DNA of 64,000 nt, from assembly GCA_002269645.1 (NCBI GenBank), contig NIVC01002203.1, positions 1 to 64,000 on the forward strand. Direction: 5' to 3'. This DNA comes from Macrostomum lignano. Its lineage: Eukaryota. Numbering within the stretch: position 1 is the stretch's first letter; every line of letters begins with the position of its first letter. The position numbers and the translations under genes were made by a program. Below, in pieces: positions 1,700-8,345 of this stretch. The notes beneath the pieces were generated by a model. It was given only the letters and a program-made list of their open reading frames with translations, had not been told where the DNA came from and did not search any database.

Positions 1700-1891
1700 A
1701 TCATCATCATCATCATCATCATCATCATCATCATCATCATCATCATCATCATCATCATCATCATCATCATCATCATCATCATCATCATCATCATCATCAT
1801 CATCATCATCATCATCATCATCATCATCATCATCATCATCATAATCATCATCATAATCATAATATTAATAATAATCATCATCATCTTCATC
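1700..1891. repeat. (CAT)n/(GAT)n microsatellite, 3' flank of retroelement A
   Basis: About 47 pure CAT units, then degenerate CAT/AAT/CTT units. Confidence 0.95.
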
Positions 1892-2452
1892 TTCTTCTTC
1901 TTCAACCGTTTTGTCGCGGCGTACGTGCCCTGCGAGCCACTATTCTCCTCTGCACTTTTTCCTGTGACGCGCCATGTTCGTCAAGGCTAGCATCTTTCCA
2001 CAATCCGGACACGGTCCGGTCTTGCTCCTATACACGCGGGCTGTTACGTTCTGCTCCTCTGCTACCTGTTGTTCCTCGTGCTGTCTGCAGTTCCTCCTGT
2101 GTCTGGATAAGTTCGATTTAGAGACGGTTTTTCCACACGCATTGCAGGTGATTCGGCTTCCTTGCACCTCTTCCCCGCGGCATGCCTTCATGTCTTGAAG
2201 TCCCCGCCGCACTTCGGGCACGGCAGACTGGCTCTGGTCATCACGTGGTGCATGCGGCGCTGGTGCCCTTCCATGGTCTCCTTCCATCTTGTTCGATCAC
2301 GAACTAGCCGTTCAAGATCGAGTTCTTCAACCTTAGCATTTCTTAGCAGTTTCTTCCAGAACGAGATGATGGTCTGTCTTCGGTGCTTCGCTTTCCGAAC
2401 TCCTTCTGGGTCTTTACTCCATCCGAGAACGCACTGCTTCGCTAGGTTGTCA

Positions 2453-4351
2453 TCATGGTAGCCGTAGCACGTGCCCCATTCTCCTCCAGTGTGCCATCTC
2501 AATTTTTGTTGAGATGCTGGTGACTCTAAGATCGTCGCGGACATCCCCGCTGTTGGCACCTTTCTCTTTCATTTCTTTTAGAGGTGGCTTCGTCTTGCTG
2601 CTCCATACGTAACGATATAAGCGGTCCACCGTTTTCTGGAGCGTTTTAGTTTCTGACTTATGGAAAAGCCTGGCGCCGCAGTTGAAGAGCATGGTGCTCT
2701 CGACGCAGGCCTCAACGATCCTAGCTTGGGTTCTCTTAGTAAGTCTAGTCTTTCTGAGCATGTTCCGAACTCCGGCTAATGCTTTCGGGGCCCTCTGCAA
2801 TCTTTGTCCAATATCATTTTTGCGTCCTAGCCAGGTGCCGAGCATCCGTATGTTGTTATTGCTTTCAGTCCCCAGGACAGCGCTCTCTTCTTTGTCATCG
2901 TTAGTAATTTCCTCGAATTCTTTCATTACCTCGTTTATAATTTTTGTTCCTCGCTCAATTTCGTTCGTAGCTCCGATAATCGTTGTATCGTCGGCGAAGA
3001 AAGAGCACGACACGGTTTTCGTTGTCGTTTCCTCATTAAATTTATCCAATCGTTGCGGGGGGAGGCTATGCCCTGAACGACAAGTCCAGCGGATTCCAGC
3101 TATTTCGCCGTCGCTAATGGCCGCGGTTTTTCTCTCTTTCTCGGCAAGGCGTATTGCTGCTTGGTGATAGACGTTAAAGAGTATCGGGGAAGTGGCGCAT
3201 CCTTCTCTTAGACCACGCTGGGGTAGAAGGGTGTGCTCTCCTCGTTGTCCGATATGACTACGTCGTTTCCTCGTGCAGGTCTTTGATCTTGTCAATAATT
3301 CTCGTTGGCATTCCAGCAAGAAGTTGCCTAAAGGGTATGCTTTACGAAGGTCAAGCAGCTTGATACTGGAGTCCAGGTTGTCGGTATGGTCCGGGCTGTC
3401 GCGCAGTTTGCTGGCGTCCTCGTTGAGGCGCCAGATAATCTGAGTGGCGTCCATTGTAGACCGGCCACTGCGGAAGCCTGCCTTGTTCTCATCGAGTGCG
3501 CCAATGTTTTCTGCCCATGCGCTGATTCTTGTTGCTAGGATCCTTGCGATTATTCTGCTAACTAGCGGTAGCAAGCAGATGCCCCTGTAATTGTTCGCGT
3601 TGGCTTGGTCTCCTTTTTTGAAGAGCGGGATGATTTGACTGATTTTCTGATTCTCTCTCCAGTCTTTGGCTGGTGAGTTCCCCAGATGGTGGATTTCCTT
3701 TCTAAGCGATGTTTTCGCCTCCTCACAAGCTTCCTTGATGTACCTTATTCTTACTCCATCAATTCCTGGTGCTCCGTCTTGAATCTTCATCCATTCCCTC
3801 TCGATTTCTTCGTCTTCTAGCGGTGCGTCTAGCTTTTCGTTGGCGTCTCTAACCGTCATGCTGTCCGGTTCGTGAGCTCGTTCCGTTCTGAGTATGCTTT
3901 CTTTGATCAGTTCAGGGGGGTTCTCGTATCGTGAGGCTTGTAAAGTTTCTAGATGGTCTTTAAAATCTTCCGCCAAGAAGAGTGGTGATGCTTTGCTACC
4001 ATTTGCGTTTTGTTGTGTCGCTCTTCCCATCTTCCGCAGACAGTCGTACATCTCTGCGATGTTGCCACAATCACAGTGGTGTTTACATTTATCGGCAATG
4101 TTGACCCACCAAGCATCTTCCCATTCTTGCAGCTTCGTTTTCTTGATCTGTCTGCACACTCTAACGTGTTCGATTGCTGTCGCGATCCTTGTCGTGTTCT
4201 GGTCATCGTCAGGAGACAGGCGTGCACGATCTCTCGCTTGGTCCCGGGCGCTGAGGGCTCTAGCGAGGTTGATGTTGAGCTCCTTCAGTTCCTCCTCATG
4301 TCCAACCATCCAGCTGTTGGTTTGTCTGGTTCTCGGTCCGCATATTTCCAT
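2453..4351 (-). pseudogene. Reverse transcriptase portion of the element A ORF
   Basis: 632-aa ORF with non-LTR RT motifs. Local frameshift around 3300-3230 and frameshifts at both ends. Confidence 0.85.
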
Positions 4352-5661
4352 TGCGTTTTCAAGTAACTTTTTTCGGTCATTTCCCAGTTCATTGCCTCGT
4401 CCCTTTCTCGATTTGGTTCGGCTGTCTCTTCTGTATGTTCAGGTGTTGCTAGCCTCTCCTCTGTCTTCTTCCGAAAACTCTCTTTCACTTCTGGGTCACG
4501 GAGTCTAGTCCATTCGACCTGTTTGGTCTTTGGTCCTTTATGTTTTTGATTATTGTTGGTGTTCCTGGCATTGGGCTGCTTGATGGCGGTGCCTGGTAGC
4601 ACAGACAGCACTTTCGGCAAGTGGTCTGATAGCAAGGTTTCCGAGTGGTCTGTTGAGATTCGTCTCACCATTTTGTGACGGTCTTCCTTGCGCATGGCAA
4701 AGCCATCCAACTCGTACCAGGTGCCCGTGCGGGGGTGTTTCCAAGTTTCGGGTTTGTTCTGGTGATAGTAAGAGCTGACCCACACCATCCGTATGCTTTC
4801 CAACCAGGTTAGGAGGTCGGCGCCTTGTTGGTTGGTCAGGCCTTGGCGGAAACTCCCGGCGCTTCCATACTTGTGATGCAGTCTTTTTCCGACGTTAGAG
4901 TTTCAGTCACCTCCGATGATCATTGGTGAGTTTTGACCTATGGTGTTTAGCAAACGTTCAATTTCCGTACAAATGATTTCCATGTCTTCTTCGTAGGCTG
5001 GACTGTCTTTGATTGGTTGGTAGATCGTCATCACCACTGCTCCGCCAATTTCTATTGCAAGCGTTCTTTCTTGTGGGTGCATTTTTCTTCCTTGCGAGGT
5101 CCATAGGGTCCAGGCGGTGTTCCTTAGCAGAATGCCCACCTTCTGTGAGAATATTAGGTGGCAATCCTCGCCATCGCAGTGATAAGTTCTAATGCCTGTC
5201 GATTTAGTGTCGAGTTCAGTGAATAACGTTAAGTCCCATTTCCGTTAAGCCAGCTTGACCATCTCACCGAAATGCCCCGACATGATGTTAGCCCTTTGTG
5301 CGTTCTAGATGGCGATCTTGATTGACTCTTCTTTCCAACGTTTTTCGGCCAATTCCTGTGTGTGTGTTCTTCTTGCTGTTCTGCGTCTCTCCCTGCGCTT
5401 CTTCTTTCTGGCTTACCTGGCTCGGTTCTGTTGTCTTGTTCTTGGTCCAGGGTTCTTTTCGATCGTCTGGAGTCTGCTAGCGATCTCATTTGTCACTCTT
5501 CTTTCCTCTTCCCTCCTTCTTTCTGTCCTCGCGGGGTTTTTTTCACGTAGATCTTGTTTATAGAGGTGCCAGGGTCCGTTAATCCCTGGCCACTCTGTCG
5601 AGGGAAGGTTTGCCCACAGCTGTCAGAGGTTAGTCTGACTCTGTGGGCCTCTCCCCCCCCC

Positions 5662-7775: not shown

Positions 7776-7789
7776 GTCATAATCTTCTT

Positions 7790-8198
7790 CTTCTTCGTCC
7801 CGTTCTCGCCCGGAGGGCATGGGACACCGAGAGCTACGTGCCTCTGCACGTTCTTTTGTGTCTTGCCATATTAGTTTTGGACAGCTCCCGACCACAGTCT
7901 TCACACTTTGCTGTCTCTGCACGATACTTTCTAGCAGCTGTCCGACCCGTCTGGTTGTCTCCTGTTGTTGTTGCCCTTGTTGTCGCCGTTAGCGTTGCCG
8001 TCGCCGGTGTGGTCGTCGATGTTCCTCTCTCTTGACTTTCGATCGCGACTGCCGCTGCCCCTCTGCATGTTCGCCTGTGCCTCGCCAGATTGGATTTCGA
8101 TACCATCGTCTCGCATCTGGTGCACCTTACTGTTTTGGCATTCATTTCTGTTTCACCTTGGCAAGTCTTTCTGTGGTTGAGTAGTGTCGCTTCTTGTC
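7790..8198 (-). mobile_element. 3' fragment of a related element (D) with a 14-bp TSD
   Basis: ORF 7834-8145 with CTRCETMVSKSNLARHRRTC and CEDCGRELSKTNMARHKRTC. GAA tail. Direct repeat GTCATAATCTTCTT at 7776-7789 and 8199-8212. Confidence 0.75.
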
Positions 8199-8345
8199 GT
8201 CATAATCTTCTTTTTCTTCATCATCATCATCATCATAATTATCATCATCATCCTCCTCATCATCACCATCATCATCATCATCACCATCATCCTCATCATC
8301 ACCATCATCCGCACCATCATGCTCATTATCCTGGTCATAATTATC
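8199..8345. repeat. Degenerate (CAT/CAC/CCT)n tract at the 5' end of the retroelement stack
   Basis: Direct reading. Confidence 0.85.

Follow-up and report, generated by a model that had tools for sequence, protein, structure and literature searches.

In a 64-kb stretch of Macrostomum lignano DNA (contig NIVC01002203.1, positions 1 to 64,000; hereafter the window), one (GAT)n microsatellite has very probably been hit at least four times by one lineage of long interspersed nuclear elements (LINEs) with an APE-type endonuclease and a single open reading frame (ORF). The result is a head-to-tail stack of four units, A to D, at positions 1700–8345, whose coordinates are given here in minus-strand order, starting at 8345 and ending at 1700. 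In each insertion, the sense strand of the element lies on the GAT strand, and the element's own 3' tail joins GAT directly and in triplet phase; this tail is (GAA)n in the stack, and sister subfamilies have (GATAC)n, (GATTCAA)n or (GATA)n. Each insertion also carries a target-site duplication (TSD) of 10–17 bp of tract sequence. Because the TSD is made of tract sequence, GAT repeats remain on both sides of a new copy; because they remain on both sides, the tract stays a target and head-to-tail stacks accumulate.

Architecture of the four-unit stack

The stack opens with a degenerate GAT/GGT/GAG/AAT tract (8345–8200), the upstream remnant of the target microsatellite, which ends in GAAGAAAAAGAAGATTATGA; its last 13 nt (8200–8212) are the 5' copy of the TSD of unit D. 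Unit D (8199–7798, 0.4 kb) is strongly 5'-truncated and comprises the third and fourth of the family's C-terminal zinc fingers (ZF3 and ZF4) and the 3' untranslated region (UTR), which ends in ..CCCATGCCCTCCGGGCGAGAACGGGAC. An intact 103-amino-acid ORF (8145–7834) carries the ZF3 helix SKSNLAR and the ZF4 helix SKTNMAR. Only 21 bp, (GAA)4 GAT TAT GAC at 7796–7776, separate D from C, and within this spacer the (GAA)4 tail of D (7796–7785) overlaps the 3' copy of its TSD, AAGAAGATTATGA(C), at 7789–7776. Unit C (7775–6196, 1.6 kb) is 5'-truncated within the reverse transcriptase (RT) and starts near ..RGLREGCPTSPVLFN. Its 443-amino-acid ORF (7694–6363) encodes the C-terminal half of RT followed by ZF1–ZF3, while ZF4 lies in another frame (6309); two frameshifts, a lost ZF3 histidine and a tyrosine at helix position +3 of ZF4 attest to its decay. 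The tail of C is a single GAA, after which a GAT tract with TAT/AAC interruptions reaches unit B (6195–6110).

Unit B (6109–5799, 0.3 kb) is non-coding. Its first ~55 nt match the ribozyme in the 5' UTR of unit A from about nt 22 onward and include a covarying P4 helix; its final ~110 nt correspond to ZF4-helix codons and the 3' UTR (..GGGGTCCCACGCGAGAAAAGGGCA). Since a 5' UTR piece is joined here to 3'-end sequence, B is read as an internally deleted derivative. It is followed by a (GAA)6 tail (5798–5781) and a GAT/CAT/AAT tract that runs to 5732, and the last 13 nt of this tract (5744–5732) are the 5' copy of a candidate TSD of A, GATGAAGATGATG.

Unit A (5731–1904, 3.8 kb) is full-length but dead, and combines APE, RT and zinc fingers with a putative ribozyme fold at its exact 5' end (5731–5662). 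Specifically, its APE region spans ~5340–4500 with the motifs IIGGD and SDH (tblastn APE pieces at 5463–4501), RVT_1 was found at E=8e-13, and RT occupies a 632-amino-acid ORF at 4351–2453; ZF3 (2146–2087) has the helix SKSNLSR, and ZF4 (2011–1952) has ALTNMAR. Four in-frame stop positions (5307, 5247, 4905 and 2455/2452) and three frameshifts (near 4300–4366, 2453 and 2200) interrupt the unit. Downstream of its (GAA)4 tail (1903–1892) come GAT GAA (GAT)n with TAT/AAT variants and then ~47 pure GAT units (1891–1700); the 3' copy of the candidate TSD, again GATGAAGATGATG, takes up 1891–1879, and the tract stops at unique DNA (..ACACTCAGACGAGCG). All four units are now inactive.

The 3' ends of all four units are related just ahead of the GAA run (..CCCAyGCC..CGGCGAnAAAAG..). 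Units A and C are 52% identical in amino acids over 205 residues, and A and D are 47% identical over ZF3–ZF4, while the sole blastn DNA match among the units is one of 52 bp between A and C. With almost no DNA similarity the units are not tandem duplicates: tandem duplication was rejected on the near-zero DNA identity and a protein identity of just 47–52%, in agreement with the original prediction of homologous yet divergent copies. Across the 64 kb, matches to family proteins occur only at 1931–5241, 6217–7810 and 7840–8208, all on the minus strand, which also holds every long ORF within 1700–8345 that has relatives in databases. All (GAT)n or (GAA)n runs of at least four units likewise lie within the stack, except one (TTC)4 at 40948, and a scan of the remaining 57 kb found no GAT run of this length.

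The mapping of tracts and units from 8345 to 1700 bears out the predicted head-to-tail stack in one orientation, with only GAA/GAT triplet repeats between the units. Two details of that prediction change. It had all units inserted into a GAA/GAT tract: the GAT is indeed the flanking target, whereas the GAA is the elements' own tail. It had also counted four copies, which is right for A, C and D, whereas B is an internally deleted derivative rather than a simple copy.

Oriented insertion into GAT microsatellites in other assemblies

To test the preference for GAT tracts, we fetched the genomic context of the closest proteins and scanned a metagenome collection with the family alignment; the scan yielded 62 loci, of which ~35 are true relatives (individual loci carry the prefix L below). 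The flank test covered ~25 relatives from other assemblies, and a junction was called positive when (GAT)3 or longer lay within 45 bp. With the window copies included, 15 of 20 3' junctions and 11 of 16 5' junctions were positive. Outside the window, the tabulation of flanks and orientation that had been proposed with the original prediction gave GAT at 12 of 16 3' junctions and 8 of 12 5' junctions, always in the sense orientation. The background frequency of (GAT)3 is 3.7e-4 per 45-bp window per strand, as measured on 101 kb of flanking DNA, so that the enrichment at junctions reaches binomial P<1e-25 even without the window copies. As to strand, 26 junctions show sense-strand GAT and 0 show antisense ATC.

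Single loci illustrate the pattern. The full-length 4-kb copy in L002 has the order (GAC)21(GAT)27, element, (GAA)6, (GAT)5AC and unique DNA. One subfamily contributes three independent insertions, all of them full-length (L013/L018, L014 and L016), which start directly after GAT/GGT tracts, upstream of which lie differing unique DNAs, with no GAA before the tract. At their 3' ends, L013, L014 and L015 pass from (GATTCAA)2-3 into (GAT)4-16 and then into three distinct unique flanks. The copy in L007, with the tail (GATAC)4, and copy 1 in L070, with the tail (GATA)5, also run into GAT tracts, and copy 2 in L070, with the tail (CAGA)4, adjoins the next element after only CAATCAT.

Several copies weigh against a strict preference. 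L003 lies in unique DNA, where its (GAA)15 tail is directly followed by the anchored TSD GTGAAGTACC; the surroundings of L011 are unique DNA too, and L004, L012 and L007 are bordered by unique sequence at their 5' ends. The preference for GAT is thus strong, not absolute, and preferential, oriented insertion into GAT microsatellites is well supported. Two more distant relatives at 35–37% identity have no GAT flanks, namely L068, which comes from the acoel Convolutriloba macropyga (OZ077307.1), and L069. Their tails are (GAACA)6 and (CAAGA)3, each has just three fingers, and a Cys-rich extension precedes the endonuclease at the N-terminus. Since these two show other tails and no GAT, the GAT habit belongs to a sub-lineage.

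A separate observation concerns L004 at 4100–4406, where the 5' end of the family copy adjoins the N-terminal RT region of an unrelated LINE and not a GAT tract. Template switching may have made a 5' chimera here, or the copy may have inserted into another element.

GAT as the probable target and the growth of stacks

Anchored TSDs begin right after the element tail and mix repeat units with non-repeat bases. They read (GAT)5AC in L002, (GAT)4TAT in one copy of L005 (L005a), and AAGAAGATTATGA(C) and, as a candidate, GATGAAGATGATG for units D and A of the window. The TSD of D is 13–14 bp of complex sequence (AAGAAGATTATGAC); the candidate of A is 13 bp long and shows the same GAA interruption on both sides. 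Across subfamilies the GAT tract is constant while the tail unit varies. We conclude that GAT is mainly target, because 5' tracts occur without an upstream element or GAA, because TSDs can be anchored in the tract, and because the tract is constant against variable tails. A point on the other side is that the TSDs of several copies consist purely of repeat units and are impossible to anchor.

The alternative that survives best, although we consider it unlikely, makes the GAT tract a product of the element itself, namely a composite tail (GAA)n(GAT)n, with stacks arising when copies land in earlier tails, or by chance. It has a precedent in Rex3, an RTE-clade element of teleost fish, whose tail GCG(GAA)2(GATG)8-17 is regarded as its own (PMC6274825), and it would suit L004 and L007, which are GAT-rich on the 3' side only, as well as the constant triplet phase of tail and tract, with anchored TSDs starting G(AT). 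A composite tail is nevertheless at odds with GAT at 11 of the 16 5' junctions, and with the tracts of L002, L005a, L013, L014 and L016, which have unique DNA upstream and no recognisable element or GAA run. Moreover, the TSDs (GAT)5AC and (GAT)4TAT join GAT units to non-repeat bases, and subfamilies with quite different tails all meet GAT. The Rex3 tail does suggest that part of the 3' GAT tract could be templated, which also counts against a purely target origin; it is possible that some GAU is templated from read-through transcripts, and this would help priming.

Upstream of long GAT tracts, the sequences at L018 1–20 (CGAATAAGAA..) and L002 5060–5090 (..ATGCGAGCCTACGCTAAATAAAG..) bear a faint likeness to the 3' boxes of the elements, which hints that older copies, extremely truncated, gave rise to some of the target tracts.

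Stacks recur outside the window. L005 holds two full-length copies, L070 two LINEs and a short non-coding element, and L001 a short element and a truncated LINE, and the stacked units are separated only by tail and GAT. Counting the window, stacks make up 4 of the 7 long-flanked loci of the GAT-associated lineage. As the TSD of D duplicates sequence at the 5' junction of C, D was inserted after C, and this order favours repeated insertion over both recombination and mis-assembly, each of which keeps some probability at the junctions of B and C.

Recombination would have built the stack from elements that stood singly at other places, each already with GAT tracts at its sides, through unequal or ectopic exchange between those tracts. 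Same-orientation GAT flanks on every element make such exchange mechanistically possible and would keep the orientation automatically; in addition, the B/A and C/B junctions are pure repeat and offer no decisive TSD for B or C. We nevertheless hold recombination to be quite improbable, given the complex 13–14-bp TSD by which D duplicates the C junction, the 13-bp candidate TSD of A with its identical GAA interruption on both sides, and the same direct joins of tail, tract and 5' end in L005 and L070, where L005a has its own TSD. Least credible of all is an assembly artefact, in which separate copies were mis-joined through collapsed microsatellites: 50–190-bp microsatellites between repeats are classic mis-join points and the window is very rich in tandem repeats (88 rows from Tandem Repeats Finder, TRF), but TSDs span the junctions, the four units belong to different subfamilies with distinct tract variants between them, and three independent long-read-style contigs from other samples share the architecture.

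Together, the flank survey, the recurring stacks and the anchored TSDs uphold the prediction that a (GAA)n-tailed lineage prefers GAA/GAT tracts, the tails of earlier copies among them, and in this way self-assembles orientation-locked arrays.

Family identity

The family is an APE-type retrotransposon that lacks long terminal repeats (non-LTR), or LINE. Among solved structures, the family profile best matches human L1 ORF2p (E=6e-20), with R2 at ~1e-14, and the homologs contain PF03372 and PF14529 (APE) N-terminal to RT. The hallmarks of LINEs are present, including truncation of D, C, L001 and L003 at different points, 3' tails and short TSDs. Full-length copies in L002, L005 (two) and L013 measure ~4.0 kb and carry a single ORF with APE and RT and no separate ORF1; the ORF starts 150–250 nt from the 5' end. 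The 3' tails are short repeats, not poly(A), and comprise (GAA)n, (GATAC)4, (GATTCAA)2-3, (GATA)5, (CAGA)4, (GAACA)6 and (CAAGA)3.

The closest proteins in a collection of 5.8 billion are only ~43% identical, and protein searches for a clade name returned almost only unnamed ENA/JGI proteins; the only named homologs come from Convolutriloba (an uncharacterised protein, 35% identity) and from Prorocentrum (25%). The original prediction had called the elements RTE-type, and this label is plausible: a length of ~4 kb, a lone ORF without ORF1, tails of short repeats, a putative 5' ribozyme and bipartite derivatives all fit. After RT follows a stretch GHVxRM..LGW..DRxxW, which we take to resemble the C-terminus of BovB. 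The part that does not fit is the remainder of the C-terminus. Where an RTE element should have a short, finger-free end, nearly all intact copies have four conserved fingers after RT, an array that is atypical and no described RTE feature.

Two further observations concern the ends of the elements. Short non-coding derivatives that run out into GAT tracts and retain nothing but the 3' end and the 5' UTR (the ribozyme region) are found at 5799–6109(−) in the window, at 5600–5904 in L001 and at 12905–13235 in L070; those of L001 and L070 share the start GCTAGCCCAnGG. The LINE may mobilise such derivatives as a non-autonomous family. Additionally, a conserved 3' box, ATGCC-N3-5-GGCGAYAAAA, is seen just ahead of the tail among the window units and L001–L007, in most of the copies with a (GAA) tail, for example at 6196–6230 and 7798–7830 in the window. 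The GCC and GGC of this box could pair as a tiny hairpin, and the box may be a recognition site for RT; an automatic hairpin search at 3' ends found no uniform structure.

A putative ribozyme at the 5' end

Full-length copies appear to start with a fold like the hepatitis delta virus (HDV) ribozyme, as suggested by a weak Rfam match and strong covariation. The Rfam model RF02682 matches 5731–5662(−) over its full length, starting at the first base of unit A, with 28.1 bits and E=0.041. The helices in A are P1 GTTCGGC/GCCGAGT, P2 GAATG/CATTC, P3 ACC/GGT and P4 CAGCC/GGTTG, P2 forming the pseudoknot. Since the most divergent 5' ends came out misaligned in MAFFT, we counted covariation on an explicit segmentation checked against the sequences. 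It covers nine 5' ends from five subfamilies, and in these each position of P1–P4 is paired within a nested double pseudoknot that begins at nt 1. Compensatory changes affect 4 of 7 positions in P1 and 2 of 3 in P3, and the sequences of P2 and P4 are wholly different between subfamilies; L070 contributes a sixth P1 type. Against a ribozyme stand the score of 28.1, which lies below the gathering score of 44, and an Rfam search of eight other loci that gave no ribozyme match at E<=1. PMC5786205 reports HDV-like ribozymes from the 5' ends of RTE, R2, R4, R1, LOA and Ingi elements.

Zinc fingers and a proposed model of insertion

The C-terminus of the ORF after RT contains four conserved fingers: ZF1 is a classical C2H2 finger, ZF2 has the spacing Cx2Cx12Hx3C, and ZF3 and ZF4 have Cx2Cx11Hx3C. 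The profile matches the solved C2H2 arrays Aart, CTCF, ZNF568, PRDM9 and Zif268 at 6e-12 to 1e-5. Among 85 distinct ZF3/4 fingers, Asn at +3 and Arg at +6 each occur in 91%, and Ser, Thr or Ala at −1 in 82%, which gives the helix pattern S/T/A-x-S/A/T-N-hydrophobic-A-R. Engineered GAN modules all have N(+3) and R(+6), the GAT module being TSGNLVR (PMC3607563, Table 2). The N/R signature persists across subfamilies whose tails differ, in parallel with the GAT flank, which is likewise constant. AlphaFold models ZF3–ZF4 as two beta-beta-alpha fingers (predicted local distance difference test score, pLDDT, 86–94) joined by a floppy linker.

The original prediction named endonuclease specificity and tail–target microhomology as candidate causes of targeting, and the zinc-finger array may be added as a third candidate. 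Judged by their helices, ZF3 and ZF4 might dock on (GAT)n, position the endonuclease and fix orientation and triplet phase, a tentative idea that we regard as somewhat doubtful. Several features speak against it. The linker between ZF3 and ZF4 is 25–60 residues long, variable and of low confidence, and short canonical linkers are absent; the Cx2Cx11Hx3C spacing is that of UBZ-type fingers, with sub-threshold zf_UBZ matches in Pfam; and Foldseek gives weak hits (E>=0.027) to a mixture of DNA-binding, TRAF and UBZ fingers. ZF3 and ZF4 may have a UBZ-like role. Furthermore, we found no correlation between helices and GAT flank: the GAT-less L003 and L011 and the outgroup L068 keep N/R helices, and since these exceptions retain them, they are mild evidence against finger guidance. 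GAA, GAT or AGA occurs in each tail unit, so that it might instead be the element's own tail that the fingers bind.

Repeated insertion into one GAT tract could then proceed as follows. Integration would occur by target-primed reverse transcription (TPRT), in which a nick in the bottom strand would leave a primer ending in ..ATC-3' that could pair with GA(U/A) of the tail repeat or with read-through (GAU)n. The tract may be recognised by the endonuclease, by the C-terminal ZF3/ZF4, or by both. The putative 5' ribozyme would cut the element RNA out of a read-through transcript, including that of an upstream stacked copy, and copies freed in this way would need no promoter of their own.

Surroundings of the stack

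The window is packed with tandem repeats, which make up a large share of it. These include a 3.1-kb, nearly pure (TAGT)787 array at 12737–15883, the arrays (TAGG)144 at 16654–17229 and (TCTG)158 at 47107–47730, many minisatellites with units of 7–99 bp, and an interstitial, degenerate telomere-like array of TTAGGG/TTTAGGG variants at 45489–45755. Two ORFs are largely coding minisatellites. The first, at 340–1357(+), has a 48-bp unit repeated 8.6 times and encodes a Thr-rich, signal-peptide-like protein; the second, at 8589–10377(+), just downstream of the stack, has 39/42-bp units repeated 17 and 11 times. A single long protocadherin-like ORF lies at 33570–35339(−), its best matches having just 30–37% identity, and a peroxiredoxin-like exon with the ..FYP motif region at ~47997–48680(−). 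Taken together, these two host genes point to an animal of a sparsely sampled lineage. Among the related contigs, L003 carries a PIF1-helicase/GIY-YIG gene cluster upstream of the LINE (1–5900), and L070 carries a Ty3/gypsy-type polyprotein with zf-MYND (1–4079).

Significance and comparison with known systems

For annotation, the analysis turns a dense and confusing repeat block into four ordinary dead insertions. It also shows in a concrete case how a microsatellite and a transposon can sustain one another, as each insertion leaves GAT on both sides and adds a GAA run, which bears on shared flanks among microsatellite loci and on the origin of transposon stacks and satellite-like arrays. Microsatellite-homing LINEs are rare, and they are the best natural models for giving APE-type retrotransposons target specificity, a property relevant to tools for site-directed, RNA-mediated insertion. 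The present lineage occurs in several animal-derived assemblies and offers three separable candidate determinants, namely the endonuclease, tail–target pairing and a conserved finger pair. If finger guidance were true, the family would offer a case from nature in which zinc fingers direct the TPRT of an APE-type element; together with the 5' ribozyme, it would be a retrotransposon that is guided by its fingers, has no promoter, and both seeds its landing pads and uses them again.

A literature search, with Repbase outside its coverage, found no GAT-specific LINE and no microsatellite-targeting LINE of the RTE group. The nearest functional counterparts are the microsatellite LINEs Koshi, at (TTC)n, and Kibi, at (TC)n, of the Tx1 clade, and Waldo, at (ACAY)n, and Mino, at (AC)n, of the R1 clade (Kojima & Fujiwara 2003, 2004, as summarised in PMC3812793). 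Like the present family, these are APE-type and sequence-specific within one kind of microsatellite, and TPRT with a specific nick is presumed. The Koshi target (TTC)n is (GAA)n on the other strand, the repeat that serves here as the tail. Unlike these four, the present family targets (GAT)n, with a strong preference rather than absolute specificity, and it is also set apart by its single ORF, the lack of ORF1, its own microsatellite tail, the putative 5' HDV-like ribozyme and four C-terminal fingers. Further microsatellite-specific non-LTR elements are Dong, at (TAA)n (R4 clade), Togen, at (TG)n (NeSL-related), and some HERO families (PMC3812793; PMC4640811); these have a restriction-like endonuclease after RT, whereas APE is N-terminal in the present family.

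In its 3' ends, the family most resembles Rex3, which shares a single ORF with APE and RT and frequent 5' truncation, and whose tail GCG(GAA)2(GATG)n comes closer than any other published one to the (GAA)n(GAT)n ends (PMC6274825). By its description, Rex3 has its stop codon 3 nt before the tail, and neither a zinc-finger array nor microsatellite targeting is described for it; the present family, in contrast, has a 3' UTR of 40–60 nt with the ATGCC..GGCGAYAAAA box, four fingers, and GAT also on the 5' side. RTE-derived bipartite non-autonomous elements and bodies of short interspersed nuclear elements (SINEs) have been described (Kojima 2018, PMC5786205), and, like these derivatives, unit B and the short elements of L001 and L070 keep only 5' UTR and 3'-end sequence. 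R2 offers another parallel, with zinc fingers in target recognition, an HDV-like ribozyme that frees the 5' end from a co-transcript (as cited within PMC5786205) and tandem copies at a multicopy target. R2 differs in its N-terminal fingers, its restriction-like endonuclease and its unique site in 28S rDNA, whereas the fingers of the present family are C-terminal and their role is a proposed one. Microsatellite-targeting LINEs are already known, and what is new here, relative to the literature searched, is the (GAT)n target, the lineage and its unusual set of domains.

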